64,000 bases of DNA, taken from contig DF237011.1 in assembly GCA_000708835.1 (NCBI GenBank), positions 62,001 through 126,000 of the forward strand, read 5' to 3'. Of this stretch, positions 1-63,993 are shown one piece after another; position 1 is the stretch's first letter, and every line of letters starts with the position of its first letter. Source of the stretch: Klebsormidium nitens (lineage: Eukaryota; Plantae; Klebsormidiophyceae). Below the pieces are notes generated by a model. The model was not told where the DNA came from and did not search any database. It saw only the letters and a program-made list of their open reading frames with translations. The position numbers and the translations under genes were made by a program.

Positions 1-625
1 CAGAGGCGATTGCCGCCGAAATGGCTCTTGTCCTTCAAGTGCGGAAGGCGCGACAAAGTTTCACTTTATGACGCAAACGCTCAGGAAATGCACTGAAAAA
101 GTCGTTGTTTCCCGTTCACACTTCGAAATCCAAGGTCGGTTCCGCCCTTGAAAGAACTCTGCAAGTTCCTTACTAAAGAAAACCGACGGTGGAACCGGCA
201 GTCACTTTCGCGCGCAAACGCTCAGCTTGCTCAGGCACCGAAAGCTGTCGTCCTCCTTTCGCAGTTCAAAAGTAAAGGCGGCTCCGCTCTGAAGGAGTAC
301 TGCGAGTTCCTGACCAAGGAAGATTGCCGCCGGAACCGGCAGTCGTTCTTCGCATGCGAGAAGGTCCACTTTCGGCGCATCATCATGCCGCACACTGACG
401 TCAACCTCGGCGACTGCTCCTTCCTGGACACGTGTCGCCACATGAAGGTGCGATGCTTTTACCGAATCTCGCCGCTCCTTCCTGGTCACGTGTTCCCACA
501 AGAAAGCGTGCTGCCTTTAGCGCTAAGGTCGCCTCTTCTCATCACCTATTTCACACCAAGGTGCGCTGCTTTAATCTCAGTCGCTTCTTCCTGGTTACCG
601 TGTTTCCACATGGAGATGTGTTGCT
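1..625 (+). repeat. Decayed copies of both ends of MTA exon 265-447
   Basis: ~120-230 echoes the exon start (LKELCKFLTKENRRWNRQS vs [19 protein letters not shown]), with a weaker copy at 1-60. ~470-515 and ~580-625 echo the exon end plus donor (ctccttcctggtcacgtgttcccacaagaaag vs ctccttcctggacacgtgtcgccacatgaag). Confidence 0.8.
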
Positions 626-3600
626 TGAGTTGTCACATCCTGTACCCCTCGTCCTTAAAGCCTTTCTGCGTTGTCATTGCGGTGCGTGACACCCGTTGCT
701 GTCTCCAAACGGCACGAGGTGCGCACAGTGGGCAAGATTGATAGATGTCGCGTCTGTTAAACTAACAGAGCTCCCGATCAGTCGGAGGACGTGCGTTTTG
801 AAGGATACAGCGACTAGACTGAAAACCTTCCGACGTCTCTCTGTTCAGAGGAGTAGCATTCAGCCCGTGTTTATCCTGCTCCTCAAGATTATTGGCAGTG
901 AAAGTCTTGCCCATCCTACAATTTCTCCACCGTCGAGACTGGGCGTTTTGATCTTTGCGTCCAATGCGTTTGACATTTTCGTATCAGCAGAACTTGGATC
1001 TTTTCATAACAGCAGAACTTGGGCACAACCAAGGGATTGAATGTCGACGTGAAAGAAGCATCAAAGATAATGATAACACTTGACATTCGGCAGCTTTCTC
1101 AACTTTCCCCTCAAACGCTGGATGTAACCCTTTCTTATTCGCTGAAATAAATTCCCTCTGGTTACGCGGCATCTGACTTCCGCTACTCATTGCAGACCTG
1201 TAAATACGTCCACTACGAGTTGGACCCCACCCCCGACGTCCCCCCCCACCCCAGCGTTGTTCCCCCCTCCTTGGGCGCCCCCCCGAAAAAGGGCGCCGAG
1301 TACTGCAGCCCCGAGGAGCTCGGCGAGCCGCAGTGGATCAACTGCGACATCCGGACGTTCAACTACCCGATCCTCGGAAAGGTCGGTATTCGGGCCACCA
1401 GATTTCAATAGGAGGAAGTTTTTGTATCCGTGATTCAGTCCCCGTATGTGTAATCCTAAGAGGCGGATTGGCAACGGCGTTCTCGGCAAGAGTCTCTGGC
1501 ACAATCTAATTTGAAGGAACTTCTGTGCGAATTTTTTGGCGGGGTGTTTCTGCAGACTTCTAGGTCGACTGTCGACCGTTCACAGCCCTTTTTCTGCTCT
1601 GCAGTTCGGTGTCACCATGGCAGTCCTTCCGGGGACCATTTGCGTGGATCTGTCGTTCCGATCAGGCTCAGACCATTACGTGTCGATTGTTCGACACTTC
1701 AAGTTCTTACCCAGCTAGACCCCCTCTTGCTTTGCAATCTGGTGTCACATGGCGGACCTCCCCTTGGACTTCCAGGTGGAGCTGCCATACCGATCAGGCT
1801 CACGTCTCAAATCTTTGACACTCCGGTTCGTAACCCGATCAGATCTAGTCTTGCTCTGCAGTTTGGTGTCATCATGGCGGATCCCCCCCCGAAACATCCA
1901 CACGGAACCGCCATACCAATGAGGCTTAGACCAGCTTGCGTCAGATAATTGACACTTAGGATTGTCAAAAGCCTAGAGCCCCTCTTGTTTTGCAGTTTGG
2001 TGTCATCATGGCGGACCCTCCGTGGGACATCCACATGGAGCTGCCGTACGGAACGATGGCCGACGACGAGATGCGCAACCTGAACGTGCCCGTACTGCAA
2101 GACGATGGCCTCATCTTTTTGTGGGTTACCGGACGGGCCATGGAGCTCGGTCGTGAATGGTAGGTTACCGCGCGGTTTGTATTTTCGATTTTGGGTTTGG
2201 TGCGTTTTGGAGCAAGTTTTGAGGCTGGCGAGTGGCAGGTGACCGCGACGTTTGGGTTTAGAACTAGGATTTATGAGACGCTCTTTCCGACATCCTCTCG
2301 TGGGGCAGTCAGCTGACCGGAAATGAGGTGTTGGCAATTTCACTAATGCGCAGTGAGATCAGGATCTGGAGCGTATAAGCAAGCGTTTGATCCAGGTTAA
2401 TGGAGGACCCTGCGGATTCTGGTGCACTTGTGTGTTTGGCTGCCTTAGCCATAGAATTAGTCTAGAAAGCCCCAATCGGTGTGGTGGTTGTTGAAAATGA
2501 TCTGCCGGCGCAAGCCCACGGCATCTGCTTCTAACGATGATTGTATTGACCACATCGAACGAGGTGGTTTTCTGGTTATTTGTTATCCATTGTCGGCTAA
2601 CCTGATTCTCTTTGCCTTAGTCTTTCGGCCTGAAGCTGTGGGGATTTAAGTGGGTTGAGGAGCTGACCCCCGGGTTAAGACAAAGCAGCTGCAGCGGATC
2701 ATCCAAAACCATGTCGGCTAACCAGAATCTGATTGAATTGATTAAATTGAAAACTTTGTCTTTTCAGCCTGGAGCTGTGGGGATAGAAGCCGGTTGAGGA
2801 GCTGATCTGGATTATAACTAACCAGCAGTAACGGATCACTCGAAACCATCTCGGCTGACCAGAATCCTTTGGGTTTTCTGTCCAGCCTGGAGCTGTGGGG
2901 ATACAAGCGGGTTGAGGAGCTGATCTGGGTTAAGACCAACCAGCTGCAGCGGATCATTCGAACGGGACGAACGGGACACTGGCTCAACCACAGCAAAGAG
3001 CACTGCCTAGTGAGCTGCTTTCCTTCTTTAGTTGCGAAATTTCGGGATAGATTACGAAGATATCGACCCTGGAAACGGTTCACCTGCCTCAAAACTTTCC
3101 TTGTCGGCATCCATGCTCCCCGCTCCCTCTTTCGCTCCCCTTCCAGTCAACCCAGGTTCCCTTCTCCTGATCTTCGATTACCGTCCTTGGTGGTTTGAAA
3201 ATCCGATGTCGACTCTTGAAGCCGTCGTCGGCGTCTCTTTGGATCATATGCGACGTACCTTTCCGATTCCATTTGCTTAAGGGTCCGGTCTTCATGAAGC
3301 ATTTGATCTGCTGCTTCGTTCGCAAGTACGTTCTTGCCGCGTCTTCTGCCCCTAAAAGCACCGTCCAAAGGCGTACATTCTACTGTACCTGGCTACTTAC
3401 TGAGACTTGTCGGCTGAGCATCTCCGTGCACTTGCCAGCTTCTGACGTCACAGAGCGATTCGTCTCTTACTTTCAAATCCCAAGTACGATTCCTCAGCAA
3501 AAGCCAGGGCGTCGGAACACTGCACATTCAGATCTGCGGAAGCGAAAGCAATTGGTCCTTTCTGATTAAAACGACTATGAAACCGCTTGCAGGTCGGCAT

Positions 3601-4024
3601 AAAGGGTAACCCGGTCCTAAACCGGAATATCGACTGCGACGTTTTGGTTGCGGAGGTCCGCGAGACGAGCCGAAAGCCGGACGAAATGTATCCTCTTTTG
3701 GAAAGGCTAAGCCCACGGACGCGAAAGATAGAGTTGTTCGCCCGTCCGCATAATGCCCACGCCGGGTGGATGTCGCTCGGGAACCAGTTAGACGGGGTTA
3801 GGATCGTAGACGAGGGGTTGAGGCAGCGGTTTAGGGCGAGTTATCCGGGGGTAGAGATCCAACCGGCGGACAAGGAAACAAGCGACCCGGTTTCGCCGTT
3901 GCTAAGTGATCAGAAGGAACGCCCAGGGACGCCCGCAGATGGGGTATCTGGGTCCATCGGAAGTAGCGCAGGGCTGACAGCAAAGGGTGTTGTGACCGAA
4001 GAGAGGTCCATGCAAAGCACTTGA
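265..4024 (+). CDS. MTA: mRNA m6A methyltransferase catalytic subunit (MT-A70 family, MTA/METTL3), 3' part; 5' exons lie upstream of the window
   Basis: Exons 265-447, 1196-1381, 1996-2159, 2886-3009, 3593-4024, all AG/GT bounded and in phase. They encode CCCH-type ...[20 protein letters not shown], the catalytic [21 protein letters not shown] motif, [40 protein letters not shown] and RETSRKPDE...KIELFAR. Confidence 0.97.
1590..2060 (+). repeat. Tandem ~130-bp acceptor-side echoes of the MTA DPPW exon
   Basis: Three degenerate units containing (t)gcagtt(t/c)ggtgtca(t)catggc precede the true acceptor at 1995. Confidence 0.9.
2610..2960 (+). repeat. Tandem acceptor-side echoes of MTA exon 2886-3009
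   Basis: Two clear units cctg(g/a)agctgtgggga...gttgaggagctga...cggatca...tcggct(a/g)acc, plus a weaker one near 2355-2420. Confidence 0.88.
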
Positions 4025-8649: not shown

Positions 8650-11600
8650 TCACTGCTCGACTCCCGCCCTAGCGGCTGCCGCGGCATCGCTTGCGGCGGC
8701 TGCCGCGTGGCCTTCCGCAATATGGGGGGCAGCGACTCCTGCCGGCCGGGCGGTGGACCGCTTCACCCAGCCTTGCAAAGATCGAACCGCCGACATATCC
8801 TGCGGAAGACGTAGGTGGAGAAAGATGTTCATTCGCAAGCTAGCGGGGACTCGCCAAGACTCGCAAGGTGACGGAACTCAATCAATGAAAAGAACCCGTC
8901 AAAACCAAAAGCTTTGACCTGACGTCCATTATGTTGGAACCTCACAAGCCTAGACGAGACACAGAGAGGCAGCGTTCTTCTGGAACGGTGCGCATGCCGC
9001 TCTCAAAGATCCAGCCTTTGCTCGGGATATCTGGGTGTGCGGATTGGCTTCGGAGAGCGAAAGAAACCAGTTCCGAATTGAATCTGGAACCAGAGTGCGA
9101 TCGAAAACGTTTCACCAGTTCTTGCAAAGTTCGACGCATCAGAAAGCGAGTTTGGTGTTTGTCAGTTGTCTCGTCATGCCTGTTTCTGAAAGCCTCTAGA
9201 GTGCGGCTCGCAGTTAGGTCCTAAGCAAGCTCAAGATTGCGTTTCAAGTACGACAGGCCTGTTTCCGACGGACCACCAAATCTACTTCCGATGACCAATT
9301 TGAGATACTTCCGCGCCGCTCCTCGGAACCTACCGCCAACTCTGAACTTTGGCATCCTCCGCGAAAAGCGCTCCAGAAAGCCTCAATTTCCGAGAGAAAG
9401 CTTCATCCTGAGACATCTGTTGAATCCAGCATGAACCGGGAAACAAAAGCGTCGGAGGGCGTACAAAGCCCCAGCCTTTCCAGGAGAACCTCGTTCCTGG
9501 CAGATATTTGCGTCCAGAAAGTTGGTACTGTGGAAGCATCGGAGGGCGTTGACTCACCTGGACCAGCCGCCGAGCGTTGGCCACTGCTTCCCGCGTGCTC
9601 GCGGCCGCCTGAGCCACAACTGGCTGGACCCCCGCCCGGTTGATGGTGGCACGATCCTGGAGCAAAGCTGCACGAGAGGAACGGACGAATAGAGACTGGG
9701 GGTTCCGAGACGACTTGGATCCCCTGCAAAGCTCCTTAAAAACCCCGTGGGAAACAATTGAAGGCATTCTCAGGTCTAAAGCCGCCTGATCTACAACCTG
9801 GCTGGACCCTCGCCCGGTTAATCCTGGCACGAGTTTGGAGCAAATTTGCGCCGAAGGAACAGAACGACGTCTAGTTTGGAAGGGGTGAAAGAACTTTGGC
9901 TCCCCGGAAAAACGTTGGAAGGAGGGAAAGTGAAAGGCGTCCTTAGACAAGGCTTCCCTCGAGTCAAGTACGGCACGCTCCTAAGAATAACGCTGTACCG
10001 AGAGCTAGAAGTCTTTCAATCCGGGGGGCTGCAAAGTAAGATTTTGTCCCACACAAGCTGTTTTTCTCGAAGAACTCCTTCTAGAAGAAAAGTTTCGAGG
10101 GACTGCCGAGTGTCTTTGCAGATGAAACTGAGGTATTAAGCGTGACGCCGGGGTGCTTGTGCAACAATTGAGCGATTCAGGGACAGAGGATGCGATGAGG
10201 ATGCGATGAAAGGCGTTCTAAGGGGAGGGCAACTACACGGTAGGGTCTTCTGAATCGGAAATATTAGAACGGGTCCTGTAGAAAAGTCGGTACGTGGCTG
10301 GTACGTGGGCTGAGATGCGAAGGTACGTGAAACACTGACAAAGCACCTAGTGAGCAACGACAAGGTGTCATCCGTTTGTAGCGTTCAAGAGGCAATCAAA
10401 TGAAATAACAACTCCCCAACCAGTAACTAACGGCTGTTCGAAAAGTAAGGAAAGGATACCTGGATAAACCTTCGGCGTTTGAAGAAGGATGAGCAGGAGC
10501 GACTCACTCAGGGTTTGATTTGCCGCAAAGTTGCCGACTCGCTTCAGACCGTCCTCCGCAGCTCGCATTGCCCGAGTCGAGCTCCGGATGCCATCGCTGA
10601 TGTCCGAACTACAAAGGCACACACGAAGCGACCGGTCAGAGCGCGCATCAGCACTTCAATGTTTGAGCGCCTAGCTTCATCAACTTTCATAACCGACGGA
10701 TTGTCAGATGCATAAAGTCGACCGAGAGAGCGCGCACTTTATCGCGACTACGTAAACTGTGTCCGGAAAAAAGTCGTGGGAAACATACTAAGCTCCTCAT
10801 TCTTGCGCTGATGTGTCCTGCGAATACACGCAAGGAGCGACCGGTCACGAGCAAGCGAGCAGGACCCTGTTTTTCGCATCCAATGCGTCCAGATGAACGT
10901 CCTTTTGTCGTACTGAGCTTCTCCTTCTTGTACCTCGCCCAACGCGGTTGAGTTCTATACCGTTCCTGCCAGACGGCTGATTCGGAAACATCTCCTCGAC
11001 CACGTTGTCACCAGAAATGGTCGTCTTTTATTCTCAACTAAAGATGGAGCCTCAACCTTTCCAGTTGATGCAGAACCATAATGCTCGTTCACCTGTGATA
11101 GGTTAGTAACGACGACTTGATTACTTCTACTTGCTGTATAAAAGTGGAAGAGACAGGACGCCAAAAACAGGACGCTGGCCGTAAGTCGCTCGGTTCCATG
11201 TTGGTGAGATCCCCAATCTTGTCGCAGACACGGCAGTCCTGCAACTCTGACTACGGCGATTGTTGCAACCAAACTGGCCTTCGAAAAGCTGTGCTCGTTA
11301 TAGGACGCTTAAATACGGCCTGGACTCTAGGACGACTCCACGACAATGTCGAGGAGCGAGTCTACGAAACTGTCGAGTCACCAGAGTTTTGAGACGCCCA
11401 AGGCTCACCTCAAGTCGCTCAGTTCCATGGTGAGGTCGCTGATCTCCATTCCGGACAAGCGGACGGCGGCCATCGTGGCGGGCAGCTCCTCCCGCGCCGT
11501 GTCCGCCAGCCGCTCCGCCGCACGTGCCGCCGCTGACACCGCCTGAAGATAACATCAAAAGTCAGACGTCTCATCTCAGATGTTTCTTTTTGATATGTTC

Positions 11601-28872: not shown

Positions 28873-29135
28873 GTCTAACGAGGACCGTGCTCGTGTATCC
28901 AGAAGTTGCCACCGCCTGGTCCTATTGCAAGTCTGCAGATTGATCACTACAAAATTCAAAGCACTAAATGCAGATCGCACTGTTAGAACGCGCAGATTGA
29001 GAGCTGAGCATGGGAAAAACAAATTCGGATATGAGCTGCTGCTTTGAAGAAGTTATTTCTGCTCTGCAGCTCAGCAGGCTACAGTACATATTACCTCCTT
29101 GCAGCTGCATTGCATGCAGATTACCTGGAAGGGTA

Positions 29136-43049: not shown

Positions 43050-46000
43050 TCAAAACTGTTTCCCAAGTTGTACCTTCTTGATTGCACTAGCTGCTTGGAA
43101 CAGGATCCCATCAACGATTCCAGCAACCTGCATTGACAAACACCGGCGTCAGTACCATCCAGGGATGTGGACGGATCTTTGAAAGCGGGCATCATGGATG
43201 CTGCAAGATTTCGACGCCAGTTTCACTCTGCTCTGTTCGCTTGCGTCACCTCTTCGAAAAACGTGGATCTATAAGCGGACCGCAGAAAACAACGAGCAGG
43301 CTGGGCCGCCCATTCCGCCTAACCTCTCTAATAACCATAACCCACTCACCGTAAACACTCCTCCGATGATGGCGCACACGTTCGTGATGAAGTGCGAGAA
43401 CGACCGGCTGTTTTCCGTGATCACGACTTGCATGGGGGACAGCTCGTAATGGAACTTCGCCACCGGGACCGCCGCCGAGTTGAAAACGTTGCTGTGCGCC
43501 GTGTAGTCGTAGCTCTGCACGTACTGGTGCGCCGGCAGCTTGAGCGGCTCCACTGACGTCAGCACTACTTGCAGGTAGTGCTCGTGCTGCAAACGAAAGT
43601 GGGCACCGTTAGATTGTTGCTGTGCAAGTGGAAGGAAAACCATCTCGTCCAGAGACGATGCAGAGCGAAAGCTGGTTGTGTGGCTCCATTGCGCTGGAAT
43701 GGAATATTCACGAGCGCTTACCGTCTGATCGCCGCTGTGCGGTGATAGATGGCCAATAACCGTCCAGACAAGGTGCCAACTGAAAGCTGACTCTAAACTT
43801 GATCGCTTACAGCATTGACCAGCAAAGTACGATCGCCTTGTCTTACCGTCAGCTTGTCGCTGTGCAAAAGTAGTTTACTATTCGCGTCAAGTAAAACAGG
43901 GAACTAAAGGGGCTTGCACAAGGACGTCCAGCAGCAAAAGCGACTGAAAGCCGCTGTGCCGCATCACCGTAAGGTTGCGATGTGCGAGTGGAACCAGCAA
44001 CTTACCATTCACACATCTTACAGAACAAGTGCTGCCTCCAGACACGCTTTTCAATCAGGAAGTAGCAAGAAACGACCTCTTCGTCTCACCCTCAAATTTC
44101 TGTGCGACTGCCAACAGCAGTTTAGTAATCACTTTGAGCGTGCAAGGAAAGCGAATTAGCTGGCAGACTAGCATCCGGGACAACAATCGAGGATCCTTGT
44201 GCCTTACCGTTGTCGCTGTGCGCCCTGTGAGGCGGTCCTCCTCAGCGCGGTAGTTCAAGCAGATTGCAAAGCGGAAGCGAACTCGAAGCTCGATCGCTTC
44301 AAACCGAAAAGCAGAGGTGTTAACCACCCTGTCTCACCATGATTCCGATGCTTTGCAAACATGAAGAGCGACTTACCGTCCAGATAAAGTGGTAAAATGA
44401 AGCCAACTCAAGTTCTCAATCGCGTTGACTTGAAGCACAAAAACAAACGCTGCTTTGTCTCACCGTAAGGTTGTCGCTGTGCGAGTGGAAGAGCAACCTG
44501 CCCGTCCAAACAGACTGCAAACCAGTTGCTGACTCGAGAAGTGACCCCTTTATACCAACCAGCAAAAAACAGCTTTCAAAACAAAATATCAGAAATAACG
44601 ATGACGTTGTCGCACCGTCAGGTTGTCGCTGTGCGAGTGGAAGTAGCGCCCGGTTAGGCGGTCCTCCCCGGCGCTCGGATGGTGGCTCCAGATGCGGTCG
44701 ATCTCGTGGTACTGCTTCAGCGTCGGCTTGCGCCCAAACGAGAACGAGTTGACGCTGTGGCTCATGTTCATCGTGGCTGGGTCGAACGAGTGGCCCGCGG
44801 AAACGGCCGCGACCTGCAGAGATACGAAATGAAAGTTTCATAACAACTTCAAAAGCGGTCGATCTCGTGGTACTGCTTCAGCGTCGGCTTGCGCCCGAAG
44901 GAGAACGAGTTGACGCAGTGGCTCATGTTCATCGTGGCCGGGTCAAATGAGTGACCCGCGGAAACGGCCGCAACCTGCGCAATGAATCGCGACTCTCAAA
45001 AACTGTGCTATTTTCAGAAACTCCGAGCGTTTTTCACTTGCTCTAGCACGCCTTCCCTGAAATGAGGATAGATGAAACGAGCCGACTCCGCCACAGTCCT
45101 TTTATGCGGAGGAAGCCCTCCATGTGGCACTCGAGAGGAAAGCCCGTCCCTTCTCTAGAACGCATGGATCAATGCAGCCTACCAAAACCCAGAAAAACTT
45201 TCCAACCATTACTTGTAGGTTCTCGGAAGATTCATTCACAAGAACGAGGCTCTTAATTCGGCACCCGGAGCTCTGGGGCGCATTCTTTCCATTTTGGAAA
45301 AGATATCAACATACCAAGGAAACAATTACAGCCATACCTGCAGGTTCCCACGGAAATAATCACAAGGACAAACCCTCGACCTGAGATTCGAACCGCTGAG
45401 GGGCTTTTTTTCCTTTCACGAAACACCAACAAACCGAGGAAGGAAATCAATCATACCTGAAGATTACCAGGGACCTTCTTTACGTGGACGAACCCCTCGA
45501 TCTGGCACCCGGAGCTCTGAACACTTCCTTCTCAAGTAAACACGCAAAGCAAAGGGAATTCAAGGACAGAAGACAAACGCCGCCGTACCTGCAAATTCAC
45601 GGGACCCTTCTTCACAAGGACAAACCCCTCAATTGGGCACCCGGCGCTTTGGGCGCTTCTTCACATTCTACAATTTCGCTCGAGTTCAAAACACTGACAA
45701 AAGAAAGAAACGTATTGCAACCATACCTGCAGATTCCCAGGGACCTTCTTCACGAGCACGAACCCCTCGATCTGGCACCCGGAGCTCTGGGGCGCTTTCG
45801 CGACCACGCGCAGAGCGCGCCCGTCCTTGCCCATCCAGGGGGGAACGACCTGCTGGGCGGTCGCGCCTGGGAGCGCATGCGCGCGCTGCTGGAGGCCGGT
45901 GGCCAGGTCGTCGGCGAACTAGAGAGAGGGGAGATGTAGAACAGGTCAGGAGCCGATTAGATATTGTGAAGTTCTAAGGGGGGGACTGCGCGGTCGCGCC

Positions 46001-49000
46001 TTGTAGCGCATGCGCGCAGGAGGCATTTAGCCAGGTCGTCGGCAAATAGAGAGGGGAGAAAAGGAGCGCGTCAGAAAACGACGGCTTGAGATTAACGATT
46101 CAAAGGAGTCAGGAAGACGACCTCCTGCGCGATCGTCCGATCTTGATAGGAAAGTGACGCGCGGCCCACTTGCACCCAGAAGCGCATGCGCGCGCCGCTG
46201 GATTCAATGGCCAGGTCGTCGGCGGCCAGAGAGGGGATCAGAAGGGACCCCTAAATAGCATGATGGCAACTCAACAATTGAGTTGTCAATAAGACAACAT
46301 GCTGTGTGGTTGCGCCCGAGCAACCAGTAGCCAGTTCGTCGGCAGACTGAGGAGAAGGGAAATGGAGCAGATCAAGGACTAGATTTGGCCAGGTCATGAG
46401 CGAACTGACAAAGTAAAGGAAGAAACGGATCAGCATACGCTGCTGGAATATGATGGCAAAGTCGTGCACAGCGGTGTCAAATGAAATTGGGTGGGTTTCA
46501 AGCCGGTTCAAAATGCCCCACGTAACTCTCGAGCGATGTATCCAAGCTTGGAGGATTCTCAAGTTGATCACAAACCGCAAAGTCGGCTACCGTGATAGCA
46601 GTTTCTCCACCCCCAACTTCTTCACTTGAGACCGACCTTCTCCTGACTATGTGAGAGAGGGTGATAAAGGGCAAGGCCTGGCCTGAAACTGCTTCCAGAT
46701 GATTATGGTCAACCATTTCAAGGGTTCAAGTCTCAGGATGTATTGCCCGCCTGATCATTTTTGCACACCTAGGGGATGGCCGAAGCGATCCCGACACAAG
46801 TAGAAACCACCGTCGCACCCAGACGACTGGCATTGACCGTCTCGGCATGTGTCATTAGTAGGCCTTACCTGCGTAATCGCAGCCTCCGTTCGGTCTCCAT
46901 AGTAGGACTCGTGATCGTGGTGCCCCTGTGCCGCTCGGACGTCCTGGCCGGAGCGGAAGATGCGGATGGACGGGAAACCTTGCACGTGGTGCCTGTGGTC
47001 AAAACGTCATCAGAGACAGGTTAAGAAATGGAGACGGGTTATGAGGACGGGTTAAGCATCGCAGGCTATGTTAGTCTTGTCGTCATCCGGAACCTCGAAT
47101 CTGCAGCGAAGCACAAGCTTTGCACCATCTTGATTGCGAGAGTCACGTTGGATGATGAGCATCGGCTGATGCCTCTGCGTGTAATCAGCGTTCCTATCAA
47201 ATTCGACACAGGTTTGTGGCACGGGGTAGAAGGCGACGTTCTGGCTCCACTCCGTCTAAGGACTGTGCAAAAGAGATTCGAAATCTGGACCTTCCAGCAT
47301 GAACAGGTTGACAGAACCTCGCCGTGATGTGCCCCTTATGCAACAAACGCTCTTTTGCCGAGTCTAGCTTCGCTGCTACGAGAGCCTATGTTCATGATAA
47401 AGTTGCTAGCAGTAAAGTTTGAAGTACGGAGTACAAAGCCAGCAACACTAAGAAAAGATGGAAGCAGAAACGGTGACCATCCTACTCAAGAGGAATCCTA
47501 GCATACAAATGTAGAAAGCAACTATTGTCAGCGAACTGCAAAGGAAGAGAAGAGGCCTTACTTCCGACAAAGGGCGACTTCAACTGTGCAGTCCACCTTG
47601 GCAAGCAGGATCTGCGGGTTGACATCAACATCGTACCTGCAACATGACAACACCATCCTCGTCAGACAAAGAAGATGAGATAAGTTGAGCAGAAGAATCA
47701 CGTAACTTCGACACGCAATTGATGGTTCACAAACACTGAAAGTTTCTTCCAAGGAAGAAGCAGCCCCGGTTTCGTTTGCGCACCATAAGCAAGGAGCAGC
47801 TGACGTAGTTTCAACAGAGGAACCAGGATCGAGCGATCACGTCGCGGTTGACAACAACATGTAAAGCACTCCTAACGACAATAAAAGACTTGAATTACGA
47901 ACCGTAAATAAAGATTGCCATGGAGACTTGAAACGCTGAGACTTCTCTGGACACAGACCAGTGTCAGTGCACTCAAAGCAACGAGCGTATACTCCAAAAT
48001 CGGGTCGAATTTCTGTTTAACCACAACCTTCTATTGGCACTCCTTCTTGTCGGCGCTTTTTTTCTCAGTCCAAAGTACCCCTGCAGCATACATAACTTCT
48101 AAGAGAGGACCCTAACCCGGTAGGAGACCTCTTCAAGACAAATGCGCCATAATTTAGGCAAGTAAGGCGAGGGAAAGGAAGCCATACTTCTTCAACATCG
48201 CCTTTGCAGAAGCTTCCCAGACTGGCTCCAGCCTCTGACTCCAGGGGCACCAGGGTGCGAAGAAGTTGACCATCACGATGGGGAAGGACCTGGTTCACGG
48301 CAGACGAAGGGTTCACGCAAAAGTTTTTTGACCAATTCTGCTTCTCGGCAATTCTGATCGTCTCACTACCCGTTGGGTCTGGTCTTCGAGGAAGAATGTA
48401 CAACCACGACTTGACGGCAAATCGTAATGGTATTACAGGATTTGACATTCTTCTTTGAATCCTTGCGGATGATCGAGCCGTGGATTACGTTGACAGGGTC
48501 ACCTGACAGGTTCCGCATTGAAGATAAGGCCCGAGTCGATGGTTGGAGGATTTGAGATTTATAAAGTTGACGTATCTTCTCGTGCTCAAAGTGAAAGGCT
48601 CAAAGGCAACAACTTCGACCTGGTAAACCGCATCTTTCCACCTTAACACGCTAAAGAATGATATGATATGAGATTCACCACAGTAGTTTTTCCTGTATTT
48701 GGGCTGGTTCTGAGCACCGATGCACTTTCAGATTGTGATTAAATCCCTGACCGCGTTGATTGCTTTCAGAAACCAAAAGCGACATCTCATGACTGCTTCA
48801 CATCCGGAGCTCACGCTATCCTACATATCCCCCAGGAGGAGCAGCTAGTAGCCTCACTCTTTGGTGATGGTGTCGAATGTGGCTTCGCTGAGAGGAAGGG
48901 CACCCCCGGGGTCCTTGATCGGAGGGGGATCCCCTTCCGGTGGCTGCCCCCCTTCTGCTAGCTGCCGCTCCTTGGCCTCCATCTCGGCGGCACCCTCGTC

Positions 49001-52513: not shown

Positions 52514-55500
52514 ATGGCGGCAACCGCCCTGTCGCCCTCCCTGCGGCTGTCGGCCCACTCGTTTGCATCGTGCTCTGGACGCGCCGAGAGCCGGCCCAGT
52601 TCGCAGCCATGCGGGGCGTTCACACCTGCAAGGTTGTCAAACAGAAGTAGCATATTGTCCGTCTCAGGGCAGCAGGTAATCGCAGGCAGGGGTGTCGTTA
52701 CCAAGAGACGGGAAAATGGCTCCGGTGTCAGGGCGGCCTTTCCAGGGCTAGGGGATGACTATCTTATCCCAGGGGAGTATGACATCAGCAGCATTCCAAG
52801 CGAGTTCCGGAGGGAGAACTTGCCAGAAGAGTGTGAGTGGATGACCTGGGTCATGGCATTTTCGGGGCCCGAATTAGTTGCGGGTGTTTTTGAGCTGAGC
52901 AAACGTCTCTGAAGCGAGCTTCCGGGTGTTTTTCCTGCTTTGTGTGGGCATGCAGTCAATATTTAAGAGGGAGAAGATTTCCTGTTCCATAAAGGACAGG
53001 GTTTGCACGTTTTCGCAAACCTTGTCGCATGCCTTTCTGGATCAGAAGCGGTCTCCTTGATCAGAACCTCTCTCACTGGACCTTTTGACTCCCTCGTAGA
53101 CAGCAATTGATCACTTCCCGCATGTCACTGCGCTGCAAGTGTACCACACAAAAATCAGGGCATTGGAGTGGCCTCTCCAATGTTGCTGTTCTCTCTGCAA
53201 TTTTGGTTTCAGAGTTTGTGGAGATAATGAGAGAGTTGCTGCAATCTGTGATTGAAGAGATGTAGCTAGGACCCCCTCTGTACCGATCAAACACAGTGAT
53301 TTCACTCCCTCAAAGGTTGCTGTGGGTTTGGCCAACGTGTGCTGTCAGGGTGCAGAGATCGAACCTCTTGCGCTGTTTCACTGCTTTTGGCATCGTCGCT
53401 CTTAGATTGGTTGACAAGATGTCCCCATACCGATGTTCAAGGCATCGGGCCTTGAAGTCCAAGTGCGTGCTTCGATTTTCAAGTCAGCATCTGCTAAGCA
53501 TAAACGGTCTGCTCAAACCTCTCCCTCCGCTGACGTGCCTTTCTGTCTCCTAACATCAGTCGCGCTGGTTGAGATGCTTCTCCTTGCTATCCTTTCCTAG
53601 GTAGGATTCCTGTAGCACCGTCTTGAAGTCTTTCATAAGGTTGAGGGACGAAAGAACAGCCGTAACTCTACAAGAACGCTAGTTAGTCACCTTAAAATGC
53701 CTTGCAGCTAAGCAGAATTACTCAAATGTCTAGTTCGGTATTTTTGAATTCAGCGACAGAGAAGCTGTAATACCCCGAGAACGCTAATCAAACCACATGT
53801 TTTCCTGCTGCAGTGAAGCAGAACTACTCAAACGTGCCTTCCTCCATGTTTGGCTTGACCACCTCCCAGATGGATATGTTCATTGACGAGGACAGTGCAA
53901 TCTCGCGGACAAAGACTGACCCAGTGAGTTGGAGATGACCAGTTTCATTCTAACTTGTCTCTCTATTTTTGTGTTTTTTTTTTATGATGATTTTGAAAAA
54001 TCCTTTCATGTAGTTTGATTTCATGTTCAGGTCTCCTGATATTGCTTGCTCTATTGTTGGTATAGCCTGCAAGGGTTTTGGCAGGTCGCGTTAGGGTGTT
54101 GGTCATACGACTAGGATTGTGTGTCAAGTACTGTCACGCAATGCGACATGGGATAGTTCACAGTGTACTTCGTGCTCGCATCCCTCGTACGAAGAGAGTT
54201 GCAGAGGCTAGTTTGCTCACTCGCCCTGTCTTCAGAGCAGCACATGGTCAAGATTGAACACATTGCCTAGCAACACGCCGTTGCACTCCTCCTTATGCCC
54301 CCCTCACCCCCCCTTCAAAATTGCAGAGCAAGCTGAGGGCCAGCGCGTACTACAAAACAGGGGGAGCGTGGAGCCCCGAAATGGCAGCGGGGGGGGTGGT
54401 GAGGCCAAAGGCTAACATGGGGCTGTCTACCAACATGTACCGTGGCGGGGGGGGCTACGGAAGGCCCAAGACTGCGCCCCCCGATCTGCCGTCGCTCCTG
54501 CTGGGGGCTAGGATTTGCTACTTGGGGATGCCGGTAAGCTGTGCCTTACTTTGGCGGAGCTACTCTTTGGCGGGAACACGATTTTCGGCGGGAACATGAT
54601 TTTCTACAAGACCTTTCTTGACACCAACAAACTTAGATCGAAGTCACGACTTACCTGCTTACGGTGCCCATTTGCGATCCCCCGGGTTGTGATTGAACCT
54701 GGCGGGCTTGCTGTCGTCATTCAACAGGAAAGTGATGCCATATTGAGATATCTGACCCTTCCAGACGTCAAAGACCTGACAAGCTAGTGTTCCGCTCCTT
54801 TGAGGTGTCCAGGTTGTGCCAGCTGTGACAGTGCGGACTGAAGGAGCTACAGCATTTTCGGGGCAAGCTGCCCGGTTGCGATCGATAGATAGGGTCTATT
54901 TAGATACTAGATATCAGCTAAACTTTAGCTTTGCTGCGATGTCACCTAACATCTCCAGCCGGCGAGGTAGAAGAGGGGTGATCATCGAGCCGTAGAGGCT
55001 CTGGGCAGGATCCATCCGACGTGCGAATATCTTCCACGTCTCGAAATTGCGCACCAGGATGACGTCAACGAATCTGTGAACGCACCTAAACTTACACTAG
55101 ATTTTGCCTAAACCTAGGCTAAATAGACCCTATCTATCGATCGCAACCGGGCAGCTCGCTCCGAAACTGCTGTACAACTTGATACAACTTGACACCCGGA
55201 TGTTATAACTTACAAGTTAACGACTTTAGAGATCTGTCAAGCTAGTGATTTGCTCCCCTGGCATGTGCAGGTTGTGCCGGTTGTGATTGCGGTGCAGTTG
55301 CTGTCTTTCAGCACTCTGTATTGAAATCAAATCTTTGACACTTTTGAGGACTCCAACAAGCCACCCAAGTTCGCGCCCGCAGTGATGGAGCTAACACGAT
55401 GGAGCCTACTGTTATCCTAATCCTGGCACTTTGACGACTCCAAAGCCTGACAAACTAGTGTTTTGCTTCTGTGGCGTTCAGATCGTGCCTGCTGTGACGG

Positions 55501-58500
55501 AGCTGATTGTCGCAGAGCTGCTGTGGCTCAACTACGACAGCAAAGACAAGCCGATCTACTTTTACATCAACTCCCCCGGGACGCAGAACGAGCAGAAGGA
55601 GAGCATTGGCTTCGAGACCGAGGCATATGCAATCGCCGATACGCTGCTGGTAGGGTTTTAGTTCGTTTGCATTGTTTGAAGCTCAAAGTTGATATGCTGG
55701 TGTTTGAGCACGCATGCAAAGAGGCGAGCTGTATCAGAAGCGCAGCCAGCCGTTTCTTTCAGGTTGTACAAAAACGATTCTTGCTCGTTCTCAGAGAGCC
55801 ATTGTTCTCATATGTCATATGCCGGTGAAGCCCCCACTCTTTCAACCATTTGAAGAAGGCTCTTAAAGCATCTTTTGCTCTTTTCGTCAGCCTCTTTTGC
55901 TCTTTTCGTCAGTCGGCACTACCAACAACTGTCAAATCCGAGACACTAGTCCGGAGATTGCATTCTTCGCTTCCAGCACCGTCGCACCCGGAAATGCTGG
56001 ATTTTGGAAAACGAAAATTGCATGATCTGCTCTGGCAGTGCGAAAAACAAAAGATTCAAACACCTATGATTGGGCGCCGGGCCATGCTGCTCATGAAGGC
56101 TGACCCAAACGCAAATGCACGGTTTGGAAACCACTCACCTTCAGGTCCTTCCGCGCAGTGCAAGAAGCCTAAGATCCGCACGCTGCATCCGCTTGGGTGC
56201 TGTCGTTGGGCACCAAAAAGCGCGAATCCCAACGGACTTTGAAACCGAAAAAACTGTCTTTGCAATACATGAAGCCGAAGATAGTCACGCTGATCATTGG
56301 GCATGTGTTCGGGCAGGCTGCGATGCTGCTTCTGTTGCTCGATAACGTTTCAACTTCCTTCTTTCGAGACCCTAGAATCGTGAGTTAGGAAGTCGTACCT
56401 TTGCTTTTGCAGTATGTGAAGCCCACAATAGGCGTTTGCGCAGGGCGGAGTCCATGCTGCTCTACTGGGCACCAAAAGCAAGAAATCAAGAAGCGAGAAC
56501 CATCAAAACCCTGGTAGACAAAAAAGTCTCTTGCGTTATGTGAAGCCGAAAATCCACATGCTGGTGATCGTTTACGCGTTCGGGCAGGCGGCCATGCTGC
56601 TTTCGCTGGGCACCAGAGGAACAAAGCTCCAACCCCCCCCACACTTGGAGATTATTTAAAACTCTGAAAACAACATCTTTCTTTTGCAGTATGTCAAGCC
56701 AAAGATGCACACGCTGGTTATCGAGCACGCGTTTGGGCAGGCGGCGATGCTGCTCTCGCTTGGCACCAAAAGCACGATTTCTAGTAGATTTCAACCCTGA
56801 GGAAAGGATCAAAAACTTGAAGGATTCAAATTCTGAACAGACGAGACCTTGCTTTGCAGTATGTGAAGCCCAAGATTCACACGCTGGTGATTGGGCACGC
56901 GTTTGGGCAGGCGGCCATGCTGCTCTCGCTGGGCACCAAGGGCCACCGCTTCGCGCTGCCCAACTCGCGCATGAAGATCTACTCGCCCAAGGTCAACCGC
57001 TCCAGCGGGTCCGCCATTGACATGTGGATCAAGGTAGGGCGCTACATTACCTGGCTGGTTTCTCTACTGCTGAATTCAGATTGCGATTGGGGCTGATTGC
57101 TTATTATCATGCTCTTTTGGGTTTTGAATGCTGCTGGGATTGCGCTAGTTGCTTGTAGTTAATTCGGTCGCTTGATGCTGAGAGCTGTCATTTTCACGCT
57201 AAATCGACTCGGAAAGCTTTGCTTTCGTGTGTCCTGTTCTCCTCTGCTGGCAGACCTGTAGCTGATCGTTAGCAGCACCGGTTTCTAACAGAGGCTGGTT
57301 TGCCATATCCTGCTTACCGCAAGAGGTTTGGTGAGAAAATCCAGAGGATCTTTCTGCAGACGGCTTAGTTGCTAACAATTGGACTAGCGGCGAAAGCCTG
57401 AAAGAGCTCCCCATCTGGCTTTCAATGGCAGTGTTAGAGCTTTTGAGAAGGTGCTTAAGGTCACCCTTTCGTGCATGGCTTGTCGCATCAACGAGGTCAA
57501 ACTACGGATTCGTAACCAGAAGACGACCAGACGACCGTGCATTAAACTGCGGGTTAACCCTGAAGTTCAATTGGGTAACCCTGGTCCGCCCCATCTGATA
57601 GCTTGTTAATGATACAGGCCAAAGGGCTGGAAGCCAACACGAAATACGACACGTGGCTGCTGGCGTTTGGCACCAGGAAGAAGCCGGAGGTTCACTAGGC
57701 CGATGTTTCTCCTCTGAAAGCCACAGACTATCGAATGTTAGAAATCAGACCCTCTATCAAAAAACTATGTATGCAGGCCAAAGAGCTGGAAGCCAACACG
57801 AATACGACGTGGCTGCTGTCGTTTGGCACCGGGGAGAAGCCGGAGGATCTTCCAAAGACACTGCGCCCGAAATCCTCTCCTCTAAATGCCACAGACTTTC
57901 GAGTGTCAGAATCTAAACCCTCTATCAAAAAAACTCCGTATGCAGGCCAAAGAGCTGGAGGCTAACACCAAGTACTACATGCGGCCATTGGCGTTTTGGC
58001 ACTGGGAAGAAGTCTGAGCAGCTTCCAAAGATCAATACGCCGAGATTTCAGTGCCTGAAAGCCACAGACTGTCTGATGTCAGAGCCCAAACCTGAATTTT
58101 GAAATTTTTCACTACGCAGGCCAAAGAGCTGGAGGCCAATACTAAGTACTACACGCGTCTGCTCGCGTTCGGCACCGGGAAGAAGCCGGAGGAGGTGCGG
58201 GAAGACATCAAGCGCATCAAGTACTTTGACGCCAAAGAGGCCATCGAGTATGGTCTGGTAGACAAGGTGGTGGAAGACAGCAAGCTCCAGGCTGAGAAAA
58301 GGGTAAGGGTTCGCTTTCCATTTCATTCCTGTGAGACCCTCGGGTTCGGTTCATTGTCAAGCTTCTGCTTGGACATTGTTTTGAGGTTCATCTCTCTGTT
58401 TTGCCGGAGTGTTTTCTGGTAGGCAAGGTGGTAGAAGACAGCAAGCTGCAGGCTGAGGAGAGGGTCAGGATTCGTTGTTGCTTCTGTCTTTTCAATCTGT

Positions 58501-59510
58501 TAATCACTGGGTTTGGGAAACTTTCAAGCTTTTGCTTAGACGTTATGTCTGGATTCGGAGGTTCATCCTTCATATTCATGAGCTGTTGAGTACGCTCTGG
58601 TAGACAAGGTCGTGGAAGACAGCAAGCTGCAGGCGGAAGAGAGGTCGATTGTCGGTGAAACTTCGTTTCGCATCAATTTAAGCTTCGATAAAAGTTCGTG
58701 TTGTTTGCGCGGGTTTCGGTTTCGTTTACGGGTGGGTCTGACCTTGAGGCAATCGAGGATTACTTGTGGACAAGATCGTAAAAGAAAGCAATCAGCAGGC
58801 CGAGAAGAGGGTGCGCTTGATCCCGCTCTTGGATTCGGTCAGGATCTAGTTTTCTTTTGAATCAATTATGAGGCGATTGAGAACAGTCCTGTGGACAGTT
58901 CGTTGAAGATAGCACGCCTCAGGAGGAAGCGGGCGACTCTCGATGGATTCTGGTTTTGGATCGGTTAAGGTTCAGTTGTCTGAGTGGGTCAAGGTTGCAA
59001 AATACGCCTCAGGAAAGCACGGCCAGTGAGTACGGTCTGGTGACAAGGTCATGGTAGAAAGCTGCTTGCAGAGAAGAGGTACGTTAAGATTGCCAAGCGT
59101 TGCTTTGGGGGTTGGTGTGTGGGTCACACTAAACAGCTTTGGAGAACCTGTGTATTCTGGTCATGTCCCGAAACCCCGGCCCTTGTACTTTCTTCTCTTA
59201 ATCATATCTCATCAACAGCCCACATGACTCTGTTGAAAACTTCAAATGGGCTGTTGGTGATCGAACAACAGGTGTTGCAGGATAATATAATGTGGAGCTT
59301 AAGCAGGATGGTGCTCCTCACTTCCTTGAGTAAGCGTGCATTCCTGCAAAGGGAGGTCTGTCCTCATACCGTTTTGTTACTTTGCAGGATTACGATCAGA
59401 TGATGCTGGAGGGTAAGAAGATGCGTGGGGAGGTCGTCAAGCCGGGTCAGTCGAGCGGGCTGGTAAAGGCCAAGCCTTCTGGTCCCCGGCCTTCTCCGGC
59501 CGTTCGGTAG
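52514..59510 (+). CDS. CLPR1: Plastid Clp protease non-catalytic subunit ClpR1
   Basis: Exons 52514-52832, 53814-53923, 54327-54533, 55482-55649, 56860-57033, 58120-58302, 59388-59510. Transit peptide, RPKTAPPDLPSLLLGARICYLGMPIVPAVTELIVA, YINSPGTQNE...ETEAYAIAD, FGQAAMLLSLG, PKVNRSSGSAIDMWIKAKELEAN match the ClpR1 type. Confidence 0.93.
54850..55172. mobile_element. MITE, 323 bp, probable Tc1/mariner superfamily, in ClpR1 intron 3
   Basis: 54-bp terminal inverted repeats (54850-54903 and 55119-55172, 3 mismatches) beginning CAGCA and ending TGCTG. TA flanks both sides (54848-49, 55173-74). No internal ORF. Confidence 0.88.
55675..56940 (+). repeat. 6-7 tandem acceptor-side echoes of ClpR1 exon 56860-57033
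   Basis: Units start near 56040, 56160, 56266, 56413, 56537 and 56690 (YVKPK...FGQAAMLLSLGT-like), with a very decayed one near 55675. Confidence 0.92.
57605..59090 (+). repeat. Three upstream and five downstream echoes of ClpR1 exon 58120-58302
   Basis: caggccaaag(a/g)gctgga(a/g)gc units near 57615, 57775 and 57945 (~165-bp period). gacaagg...gaagacagcaagct-type units near 58415, 58590, 58750, 58870 and 59030. Confidence 0.92.
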
Positions 59511-61737: not shown

Positions 61738-63993
61738 TCATCGCCTGGAGCGCTGCTCCTCTTGATCCCAATCGTCCCAGTTGTCGTCCCAACCCTGCGT
61801 CGACTCCTCGTCCGTCATAGTCCGGGGGCTCCGATCGGGGCCGTAACCGGAACTGTAACTGTTCAAGGCCATCCCCGCCCCTACCGGATGCTGCCCAAGA
61901 GCGCTCGACAGGTCCCCCTGAACATTCAGTAGTAAGCGCGGGGTTAGGTAGTAGATTAATAGATCATTTTGCGGACTGCGAGAGCTCGGGGGTGGATTAT
62001 ACGGATTTGGAAACGGGTGCATCGTCTTTTCTATTGCGTGAAAGCCTAATAAAATAGTCTTTAGATCTAAGTAAGAAGTTTCGGCCTTTTGGGATTCAGC
62101 CTCAAGGGGAAGCGCTTTTCGCCAGGGCTAGGCTCAGCCTATGGTTTAGGTTGATAGTCCAATGTAGGATCTGGTCATGGCCTGGCGAACGGGTGGGGTT
62201 ATTTTGGTGGTTAGGGTGGGTAAGGGTGCGGAGCGGGTGTATTTGTCCGTTTTGGGTTTAGGTTTTCAGATTTCATGTCCCCGGAGAATGTTACTATCCT
62301 ACCTAGGAACGATCCTACCTAGATTATAGGAAGATCCTGAACAAGAACTTTCTGATTATACCACTGGAAATTGTAATAAGTAGAATTTAGATTGTTTTGT
62401 TCTCACTGATTTGTAAGTTAGGTCCTGTCAGCCAGGAAAAATTAGCAACAACCATAATCGGATACATTGACGTCCGTTTCAGATCCCGTTTGCGACCTCT
62501 TCACCACTTACAGCCCGGATACATTCGGGCTTAACCGGGCTTGTCCAAGTGCGGCTGAACGACTGCGCTTGTCCTATTGAGAAATCAGGACCGAAACAGG
62601 TCGCATGCACAACGGACCTAAAGGCATACAGAACGGAAGGGGAAGTCCCAAATCCGGGAGACATCGTCCCTGGCACGCACTGAGTGCATCCCGAGAGCCT
62701 AAAACAGGTGTCTTTCCCCACGAGATTCTCGAACCCAACCACAAGCCAACCTCGGCCTTGACCGCAATGCTGACCTCAGTCTTAACCACGCACTAACCTG
62801 CATCTCCAGCTCCTTGTACTTGAACGTGGGCGATCATAACCAAAAGGCACCCTTGGCCTTAACCGCACGCTGACCTCATATTAACCACGCACTAACCTGC
62901 ATCTCCAGCTCCTTGTACGTGAAAGTGGGCGATCATAACCAAAAGGCACCCTTGGCCTTAACCGCATGCTGACCTCAATCTTAACCACGCACTAACCTGC
63001 ATCTCCAGCTCCTTGTACTTGAAACTGGACGCCCCGTGCCGCTGCTGTCGGCGCCGGCAAACATACCACGCCAACGCAGCCAGCCCGACAATCGTGGAAC
63101 CCACCTGGTGACGTCACGAAAACGTCAGCGTCTGGCAAGGCAGCCGTCATCGAACCGTTAGGATGTCTTGAAGCCGCGAAAGGAGAAAGAAAGAGATGAA
63201 AACAAGATTGCGAACGAGCAAGAAAGAAATCCAAGCGAGTGTTCCAACACAGAACCGCCACGAAACAGTTGCACCTGGTGGCGTCACAGAAAAACCGTGA
63301 TCGTCAGTCAAGGCAGCCGTCACTAAATTCTTTATAGCCGTCAGGGGGATGATTTGAAGTAAAACAACGATTTTCTTTCAACCCCCGAGACAGGACCGTC
63401 AGGAGCAGTTAGACCTTCTTATGTCACACACAACGTCAGCGGCTGTCCCGGCAGCCGTCATTGACTCGTCGAAAATCGTCAGGGAGGAAGATAACGGCAT
63501 GCCGATTGTCGAAGCGGAGCCGTCAGGAAACAACTGTTCGGCCATCCAAAAACAGAGAACGAACGGACCAGGATCGGTGAGTGATGCCACGGGCAAAGTC
63601 GCGGTGTTACATTCAGAGAAGCACCGACGTCGCTTTCCCAGCGCACATGTTCATTGCGCCTCCAATCACTCATCTTCACGAGCCCACACTGAGATACACC
63701 CCAACGACTATTCGACCTGACCCGCTGTGAAGAGCTACCTACAATCTTAGTGCAATCACAAACTATCTGTCAAGATTGTAATAGAACCTACTTTTTACAT
63801 TCCGAATCGTTTAAATCCTTACCGCAACCACCGCTGTGCTGCTGAGGCTCGAGCTTGGCAAGTTGTCGGTCCAGTCGGTTTTTCCGAGGGCCGCCCGTGT
63901 GATCTCGAAGTACTCGTCCCCTCCATTCGACTTAATTTGGATCCGCTCCGAGGAGCCTTTGAGCCCCTTCGGATCTAGAACCGTGATGCTTAT
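61738..63993 (-). CDS. Plant-specific single-pass membrane protein (At1g64385/At3g51580-like, recalled from memory), 3' part; 5' end is beyond the window
   Basis: Exons (minus) 63993-63823, 63104-62997, 61917-61738, all phase 0. TM TAVVAVGSTIVGLAALAWYVC, basic RRRQQR, KYKELEMQ and C-terminal GWDDNWDDWD are characteristic of this family as I recall it. Confidence 0.75.
62750..63025 (-). repeat. Young ~100-bp tandem triplication of an exon end plus donor site
   Basis: Units at ~62769, 62869 and 62968 are nearly identical. Each carries T(T/C)CA(A/C)GTACAAGGAGCTGGAGATGCAG|GTTAGT on the minus strand. Confidence 0.95.

Follow-up and report, generated by a model that had tools for sequence, protein, structure and literature searches.

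Intron growth, and the differences in intron length between lineages, are usually ascribed to transposons and small insertions. Introners, for example, are transposon-derived introns that form dispersed families and create new introns (PMC9860276). A different precedent is the minisatellite in intron 7 of the human F7 gene, whose first 37-bp element is reported to span the boundary between exon 7 and the intron, at a locus for which the authors argue that donor choice involves oriented scanning (PMC1557585). In the intron gain of potato RdRp (Rogers), a tandem duplication covered an intron's 3' end together with the 5' portion of the exon that follows it, and the parental splice signals were inherited. 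Finally, the small tandem duplications that arise from repair of staggered or paired breaks provide a plausible transposon-free source of a founding head-to-tail copy; the title and abstract of that report contain no preference for exon edges (PMC8355091).

Here, we describe arrays of exon-edge copies in the introns of Klebsormidium nitens, in a 64,000-nucleotide stretch of genomic DNA that we refer to as the window. The closest likeness is to F7, described as a tandem array whose first unit carries the exon end and donor, followed by a row of pseudo donor sites (PMC1557585); the same arrangement is found at the donor array of ClpR at position 58302 and at a second array, locus L006, with first-site use seen in ClpR only. 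Oriented scanning as argued for F7 (PMC1557585) would be consistent with the RNA of ClpR exon 4, in which the first donor is used. F7 as reported is, however, a single locus with a 37-bp unit and a donor-side array only (PMC1557585), whereas the Klebsormidium units are ~150 bp long, occur on both acceptor and donor sides and, by extrapolation, at hundreds to thousands of loci, and on the acceptor side it is the last site that is used. The potato duplication is a single case that created a new intron, while in Klebsormidium the phenomenon is pervasive and a copy is absorbed into an existing intron and then amplified; in ClpR no new intron lies between copies, each intron having one joint. A 6-nt microhomology at one founding joint is compatible with break-repair duplication as outlined in the abstract cited above (PMC8355091). 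Introners and the arrays are alike in adding intron sequence in bulk in certain algae (PMC9860276), but the Klebsormidium units lie only beside their own exon: two units searched across the 104-Mb genome matched nothing outside their own array, and they are therefore not transposons. Tandem exon duplication with mutually exclusive exons does not describe the arrays either, as no copy contains both exon ends and no RNA joint leads to a copy. What we find is junction-spanning tandem duplication, with same-strand, head-to-tail copies whose unit combines exon, splice site and intron. We found no published description of exon-edge copy arrays, and the Klebsormidium genome paper is silent on introns and repeats; exon-edge duplication as a common route of intron growth thus seems to be undescribed.

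Because Tandem Repeats Finder by itself recovered only two arrays, we used sensitive self-BLAST, which revealed ~19 strong arrays of local direct repeats within the window, all with a real exon edge inside them. One additional family, at 36974-38237 in calnexin, was rejected as an exon echo: it represents coding repeats of the calnexin protein. Direct HSPs within 4-kb tiles outnumber inverted ones by 72 to 3 in the window and by 163 to 3 across 254 kb of genome, and the repeats are confirmed as genuine and well above chance; an Rfam search gave no matches. Exon borders were taken from RNA joints in ClpR, from Pfam matches in MTA, calnexin, UBLCP1, BTB, ERV and Clp, and otherwise from a crude gene finder with a conservative model. 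This gene finder reproduces the RNA joints, misses genes with weak codon bias and fuses adjacent genes, so that absence of a predicted exon is not proof of intergenic DNA. Eight genes had been named from sequence as carrying junction copies, and self-comparison of the window finds at least one array in each: at four junctions in MTA, the ERGIC/ERV 'PDI' gene and ClpR, at two in the last gene, and at one in BTB2, the UBLCP1-like gene, calnexin and an unnamed gene at ~9.6 kb. BTB1 shows no array in the same comparison. The window also holds a cold-shock-domain gene, a single ORF with zero junctions. The arrays are:

61..344, plus strand, MTA (MT-A70): single upstream copy at 61-203 of intron end, CAG and ~110 nt of the exon starting near 235 (gene-finder exon); unit 141.
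416..626, plus strand, MTA: downstream copies at 474-522 and 583-626 of the last ~32 nt of the exon, GT and intron start; real donor 447/448.
1595..2052, plus strand, MTA: upstream copies from ~1595, 1718 and 1849 of intron end, AG and ~57 nt of the DPPW-motif exon that begins at 1996; period 124-134.
2593..2962, plus strand, MTA: upstream copies at 2628-2707 and 2756-2844 of the acceptor junction; exon start 2886.
9604..9863, minus strand, unnamed gene: upstream copy at 9781-9863, its AG changed to AA; putative exon ~9559-9672, read by eye.
22491..22760, plus strand, BTB2: copy at 22684-22760, downstream of the real donor 22562/22563, of the last 72-77 nt of the exon and GTGAG.
27329..27728, minus strand, UBLCP1-like gene: exon 27206-27350 has its acceptor junction copied twice upstream, with ~22 nt of exon; period 142-147.
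35477..35867, minus strand, calnexin: exon 35805-36107 has its donor junction copied downstream at 35613-35676 and, weakly, at 35477-35512.
43603..44643, minus strand, ERGIC/ERV ('PDI'): exon 44616-44813 has its donor junction copied five times downstream, and the copies occupy most of a 1029-nt intron.
44686..44978, minus strand, ERGIC/ERV ('PDI'): single upstream copy at 44847-44978 (91.7%), which reproduces the initial 129 nt of exon 44616-44813 and carries an acceptor of its own.
45183..45799, minus strand, ERGIC/ERV ('PDI'): exon 45727-45918 has its donor junction copied four times downstream, GT kept in all; period ~132.
45853..46406, minus strand, ERGIC/ERV ('PDI'): the acceptor junction of the same exon, 45727-45918, copied three to four times upstream.
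54764..55509, plus strand, ClpR: old copies at 54768-54840 and 55222-55286 of the acceptor junction of exon 55482-55649.
55662..56939, plus strand, ClpR: exon 56860-57033 has its acceptor junction copied 7-8 times upstream, and the copies fill the entire 1210-nt intron.
57612..58194, plus strand, ClpR: exon 58120-58302 has its acceptor junction copied three times upstream, with exon parts from 57618, 57777 and 57946 and CAG kept in all.
58246..59071, plus strand, ClpR: three to four downstream copies (58407, 58588, possibly 58758, and 59021) of the donor junction 58302/58303.
62730..63031, minus strand, last gene: three units that are 90-94% alike and ~100 nt long, each made up of ~28-35 nt of exon end, CAG/GTTAGT and ~70 nt of intron.
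63102..63484, minus strand, last gene: exon 62997-63104 has its acceptor and the adjoining intron end copied twice upstream; both copies are older, with the exon part degraded.

The polarity proposed for these copies holds. Exon-only queries of 120 nt were taken from 29 acceptors and 29 donors. Upstream, they recover exon 5' parts 22 times, at 7 of the acceptors; downstream, they recover exon 3' parts 18 times, at 6 of the donors; the opposite strand yields 0 copies. Eight wrong-side matches stem from exons too short for their 5' and 3' queries to be separate. At the 18 junctions that were read directly, the unit consists of an exon part (19-134 nt per copy), a splice site and an intron part, with the splice junction at a variable position between 15% and 80% of unit length, and the repeat period has a median of 150 bp (IQR 132-181). 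The largest number at one junction is the 7-8 copies upstream of the ClpR exon at 56860, in line with the earlier estimate of about seven. In the modelled genes copies occupy at least 20% of intron DNA and, at most, an entire 1.2-kb intron. The broader idea that introns are built of junction copies survives only in part: the arrays are real, but only ~22% of junctions have detectable copies, and introns at array-free junctions contain no decayed exon copies (same versus opposite strand, p=0.37), so that not every intron was built by copying. The sequence-only reading also overstated the youngest copies, none of which is near-identical. The top identity is 90-92% over at least 100 nt, in an assembly of the old short-read type (454 + Illumina) in which younger copies may have collapsed, and 'recent' is thus a relative term.

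RNA contigs from four studies span the entire ClpR introns and are base-for-base identical, with 0 differences. They show four GT..AG joints only, at an exon depth of ~1000 and an intron depth of ~10, with one joint per intron from real donor to real acceptor. Each is the junction that leaves the complete exon, which for ClpR agrees with the claim that one complete exon is always left. The site used is the last acceptor on the acceptor side and the first donor at the donor array of exon 4. No joint to a copy, and no extra exon or intron, appears in the ClpR contigs of the four data sets; contigs are blind to rare isoforms, and low-level or NMD-degraded use of decoys is compatible with these data. 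Splice dinucleotides are retained in 26 of 31 copies, which we regard as near the ~67% that a per-site identity of 82% predicts.

The number of copies had been read as a record of many independent events, and the structure of the arrays does not support this. Copies in the ClpR exon 3 array have their joints in common, the last-gene array has an identical 12 nt at both joints, and the five units of L006 have identical borders and five CAG/GTTGGT sites. Within each of two species, distal copies are the closest relatives of each other, with copy pairs W1-W2 and A1-A2 each 87% alike and 64-70% alike across species. Since joints are mostly shared and distal copies are closest kin, arrays grow by amplification of a founding unit, not by repeated junction events. 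The nearer copy is the more similar to the real exon in 32 of 42 pairs. Homologous arrays occur in two other species, the same junctions being array-bearing in all three, and the sister species shares 7 of 8 arrays of two genes, so that arrays are old yet turning over. Copy numbers differ between species (7-8 vs 3; 5 vs 0), the ERGIC/ERV donor array at 43603..44643 having five copies here and none in the sister species. Apparent differences in breakpoints at ClpR exon 4 were rejected, as full alignment revealed homologous units.

With the exception of 44847-44978, the copies diverge between species at the neutral rate. Mismatches at codon positions 1, 2 and 3 are 10.5%, 12.0% and 26.7%, and 56% of single-change codons are synonymous; changes in the real-exon lineage are counted once per copy in these figures and exon GC3 is 0.85, and we reject them as evidence of coding constraint for all copies but 44847-44978. 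This copy is shared with the sister species and carries three private changes in 129 nt since the species split, where ~15-19 are expected, suggesting that it may be conserved; use of its acceptor would leave the reading frame open for 43 codons, up to a stop.

Placement of the arrays bears on how they are founded. With arrays collapsed and segments of observed size placed at random in the modelled genes, 24% straddle one edge and 63% are wholly intronic, making wholly intronic placements ~73% of tolerated events. The arrays in these genes contain an edge in 16 of 16 cases and are wholly intronic in 0 of 16, a result with a probability of 0.27^16 (~1e-9), or ~1e-6 if edge arrays are detectable twice as long. 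Equal density in mid-intron and intergenic DNA, which the sequence-only reading had named as the observation that would refute junction targeting, is not found, as ~19 kb of intergenic DNA holds one weak family only. The intron control weakens if array-free introns were much shorter at founding; the intergenic control is unaffected. In the 254-kb sample (64 kb with good models and 190 kb with the crude gene finder), there are 53 families, 36 of them in contact with a predicted exon edge, compared with 16.1 +/- 2.9 under random shifts (z ~7), and at least four of eight unclassified families inspected are edges that the gene finder overlooked. The founding step is strongly biased to exon edges.

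Two explanations had been put forward, a high uniform duplication rate filtered by selection and a mechanism targeted to junctions, and this interpretation is supported in part. If ~150-bp duplications occurred uniformly everywhere and a filter removed events within an exon or covering a whole exon, polarity and the surviving exon would follow by logic alone, the wandering position of the junction in the unit would be what random straddling predicts, exon and intron lengths could partly set the size range, and the link to junctions would be only apparent. Because selection forces polarity and a single intact exon, these features are uninformative on mechanism, and wholly intronic and intergenic events, which this model tolerates equally, are missing (0/16 against 73% expected, the nearly empty intergenic DNA and the edge excess); we consider it improbable. 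Since uniform duplication with a filter fails this control, junction targeting is favoured for the founding events, although a tie to the splice site as such is not borne out. Breaks linked to co-transcriptional splicing or to a positioned nucleosome, cutting on either side of the splice site, with a nucleosome-sized piece duplicated each time, would explain the anchoring at exon edges, the period and the recurrence of array-bearing junctions in three species. Yet the splice site has no fixed position in the unit, a spread that fits a start in or beside exons equally with aim at junctions; serial copies share joints and are mostly amplified, not newly made; inheritance, not recurrence, accounts for most of the arrays found also in the sister species, one of which has the same joint in both; and selection may shape the size range. 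A mechanism aimed at splice junctions as such is therefore doubtful.

The arrays might instead be functional, with extra sites that bind U1/U2 factors, tune splicing, intron retention or premature termination, or yield truncated isoforms. That most copies keep their AG or GT speaks for such a role, as does the possibly conserved copy 44847-44978 with its in-frame acceptor and stop; set against this are dinucleotide retention near neutral expectation, neutral divergence of the other copies, copy numbers that differ between sister species and the lack of any decoy joint in the four RNA data sets, and we judge a functional role very improbable. The chance that the arrays are artefacts of short-read assembly is negligible: independent contigs from four RNA studies refute this for the ClpR arrays, and homologous arrays exist in two other species.

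We propose, with a probability of roughly 0.6, that the arrays are by-products and not a device: duplication of DNA, starting at exon edges, leaves them behind unused, and they are amplified and decay neutrally. A tandem duplication of ~100-200 bp that reaches from within an exon into the adjoining intron, or the reverse, would found an array. Splicing would stay with the site beside the complete exon, that is the last acceptor or first donor, as it does in ClpR, and the extra copy would be absorbed into the intron despite its intact-looking splice site; exon definition, if it operates here, would select sites in just this way. Misaligned exchange or slippage would then amplify and lose the founding unit, in keeping with the shared joints and copy relationships, leaving the youngest copies tending to adjoin the real junction, and copies would decay at about the neutral rate observed. 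Our best guess is that initiating lesions lie in or adjoining exons, where GC3 is high, with selection purging wholly exonic events. More tentatively, an exon-edge mutational process, possibly coupled to transcription, splicing or chromatin and measuring about one nucleosome, may repeatedly seed junction copies and add substantial intron length, with dozens of intact decoys per gene tolerated.

These arrays constitute a natural experiment in splice-site choice, with rows of intact, near-consensus donors and acceptors beside the real one and a single product in four RNA data sets, and they allow the rule of site selection to be tested directly in a relative of land plants that diverged early. 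The copying of intron borders represents a third route of intron lengthening, visible in action. If the edge bias is mutational, it would point to an undescribed exon-linked process of DNA damage or repair.

Chance cannot produce the excess of direct repeats in the window: a sensitive self-comparison in 4-kb tiles returned 72 direct and only 3 inverted local matches, and the matches form about 20 families with a spacing of 100-210 bp. Exon-only queries detected copies at 7 of 29 acceptors (22 upstream copies of an exon's 5' part) and at 6 of 29 donors (18 downstream copies of an exon's 3' part), with no copies of exon edges on the opposite strand. The eight genes that the sequence-only reading named as carrying junction copies are all affected (8/8). 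That reading had also described intron end plus exon start as copied upstream, and exon end plus intron start as copied downstream, a layout that reading the sequences confirms. The MTA exon with the DPPW motif (start at 1996) is preceded by three copies, each with a polypyrimidine tract, CAG, ~57 nt of exon and ~70 nt of intron; the BTB2 donor has one downstream copy, consisting of the final ~75 exon bases and GTGAG. Most of the proposed gene names likewise agree with Pfam matches on open frames: MT-A70 (MTA), BTB/BACK, ubiquitin and NIF (a UBLCP1-like gene), a cold-shock domain, the calreticulin family (calnexin) and Clp protease (ClpR/ClpP). The gene that had been named PDI5 matches ERGIC_N and COPII-coated ERV, and is called the ERV gene here. 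Separately, T strongly exceeds A on the plus strand across a ~4-kb stretch at 30300-34200 (AT skew -0.2), which matches nothing in Pfam and gives no convincing sign of coding.

To examine splicing, contigs from four runs, each of a different study, were aligned to the ClpR region (54500-60400). Because their depth is ~1000 over exons versus ~10 over introns, these contigs represent RNA. Single contigs of 1143-1269 nt run through entire ClpR introns and are identical to the window there, and these independent data rule out an assembly artefact as the source of the arrays. The contigs contain only four GT..AG joints:

ClpR introns defined by RNA joints
54534-55481, intron, GT..AG
55650-56859, intron, GT..AG
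57034-58119, intron, GT..AG
58303-59387, intron, GT..AG

At each joint, the site used is the array's last acceptor or first donor, adjoining the complete exon. Rare forms drop out of contigs, so low-level use of decoys (the extra splice sites inside copies) may still occur. ClpR intron 1 also holds a 56-nt inverted repeat (94.6%; arms 54848-54903 and 55119-55174), and one low-depth RNA contig omits 54860-55149 with ends GG..CC, more like a template-switch artefact than a splicing event. In the untranscribed stretch past ClpR, inverted-repeat arms at 60165-60223 and 60883-60941 (81%, ~700 bp apart) may be the termini of a small mobile element.

If a duplication straddled an acceptor, splicing at the downstream copy of the site would restore the normal mRNA and leave the extra copy as upstream intron; a donor-straddling duplication would behave as the mirror image. 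Since normal mRNA needs the site beside the complete exon, selection must leave both the observed polarity and one complete exon, and these features are uninformative on mechanism.

The sequence-only reading offered two explanations, uniform duplication filtered by selection or a mechanism targeted to splice junctions. Duplications lying wholly in introns or between genes should be as harmless as junction-straddling ones. We modelled genes with a simple purpose-built gene finder, which recovers every ClpR exon defined by RNA as well as the calnexin exons in their Pfam order, collapsed the arrays, and dropped segments with the lengths observed at random positions: 24% straddled one edge and 63% fell wholly within introns, whereas all 16 observed arrays contain an edge. 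Array-free introns in these genes are long (400-1900 nt) and carry no weak same-strand signal of exon edges, so room for intronic events exists. In the ~19 kb of the window that is intergenic by rough gene bounds, a single weak family occurs (66% over 82 nt), and both of its copies have acceptor-like motifs. In a wider sample of 254 kb, made by adding 19 more 10-kb genome pieces to the window, 36 of 53 families touch a predicted exon edge, whereas random shifts gave 16.1 +/- 2.9 (never above 24 in 500); at least 4 of 8 unclassified families inspected by eye are exon edges that the gene finder missed. Founding events thus favour exon edges, and the scarcity of intronic and intergenic arrays relative to random placement disfavours a uniform rate plus filter. 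Targeting survives loosely for the founding step, as an exon-edge bias; most serial copies are products of ordinary array amplification.

The median array period is 150 bp, the interquartile range is 132-181, and a second hump lies at double length. The exon portion of a unit is 19-134 nt (15-80%), the splice site has no fixed position within it, and the sample has 23 acceptor arrays to 13 donor arrays. A whole-genome search with two units returned only the array of each; they are not mobile elements. Copies belonging to one array have a common exon-to-intron joint: this holds for ClpR exon 3, for the last-gene array, with an identical 12 bases at both joints, and for locus L006, where five units have identical borders. 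At ClpR exon 4, the window's two most distal copies are 87% alike, as are the two most distal copies of a sister species, yet likeness between the species is only 64-70%. Common joints and within-species likeness show growth to be mainly amplification inside the array, separately in each lineage. Exchange with the real junction contributes too, as the copy nearer the exon resembles the real exon more in 32 of 42 comparisons across arrays.

Orthologous loci from Logan assemblies of two other organisms, the sister species (SRR23617307; third-codon-position mismatch to the window 23.5%) and SRR14092358-60 (44%), bear on the arrays' age. The ClpR exon 3 and exon 4 acceptor arrays occur in both, and 7 of 8 ClpR and ERV gene arrays occur in the closer species. 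The closer species lacks the five-copy donor array at 43603-44491 in the ERV gene, where its intron measures 567 nt against 1029 nt in the window, and its ClpR exon 3 has 3 copies versus 7-8. Shared arrays with unequal numbers show that arrays predate this split and that turnover continues. Copies reach at most ~92% identity over 100 nt in the 254 kb, which means that the process has slowed or that the youngest copies collapsed in the short-read assembly. Outside arrays, intron interiors compared with sister-species loci L001 and L024 gave no alignment despite 23.5% third-position mismatch, and seem to turn over fast through insertions and deletions.

Splice dinucleotides are intact in 26 of 31 copies reached by alignment, not far from the ~67% that per-site identity predicts. 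Third codon positions hold most mismatches between copies and real exon, because each change in the real exon's lineage is counted once per copy. Copies are mostly dead relics. One that stands out is 44847-44978 (minus strand) in the ERV gene. This 129-nt copy has the same joint in the closer species, has gained 3 private changes since the split (~15-19 expected; 13-14 in its sister-species counterpart), and lacks the real exon's four private changes. From its acceptor the frame would stay open for 43 codons before a stop; perhaps splicing does use it as an alternative site, with a truncated ERV-domain protein as the product.

Other repeat types occur alongside the arrays. A calnexin intron holds ~20 degenerate 7-bp units (CCCATGA / CCATAAA; 37939-38090), loosely like the reverse complement of the plant telomere repeat. 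Two further, different types lie elsewhere in the genome: 82-bp units, each perhaps one whole tiny exon with both splice sites (locus L014, 7200-7409), and an in-frame 84-bp (28-codon) repeat within a 2-kb exon (locus L020, 7732-8611).

The literature searched yielded no published account of a genome-wide, exon-edge-anchored, ~150-bp array process. Single cases are known: in human F7, the minisatellite of intron 7 begins with a unit that crosses the exon border (PMC1557585), and in potato a gene gained an intron from a duplicated intron end and exon start (PMC4974935). Small tandem duplications can arise through staggered-break repair (PMC8355091). Of the 24.1 kb of intron in the modelled genes, alignable copies account for 19.5%, a lower bound, ranging from 0% in BTB1 and 1% in calnexin to 39% in ClpR. 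Extrapolating from the 53 families in 254 kb, a small and non-random sample, gives roughly 20,000 arrays genome-wide.
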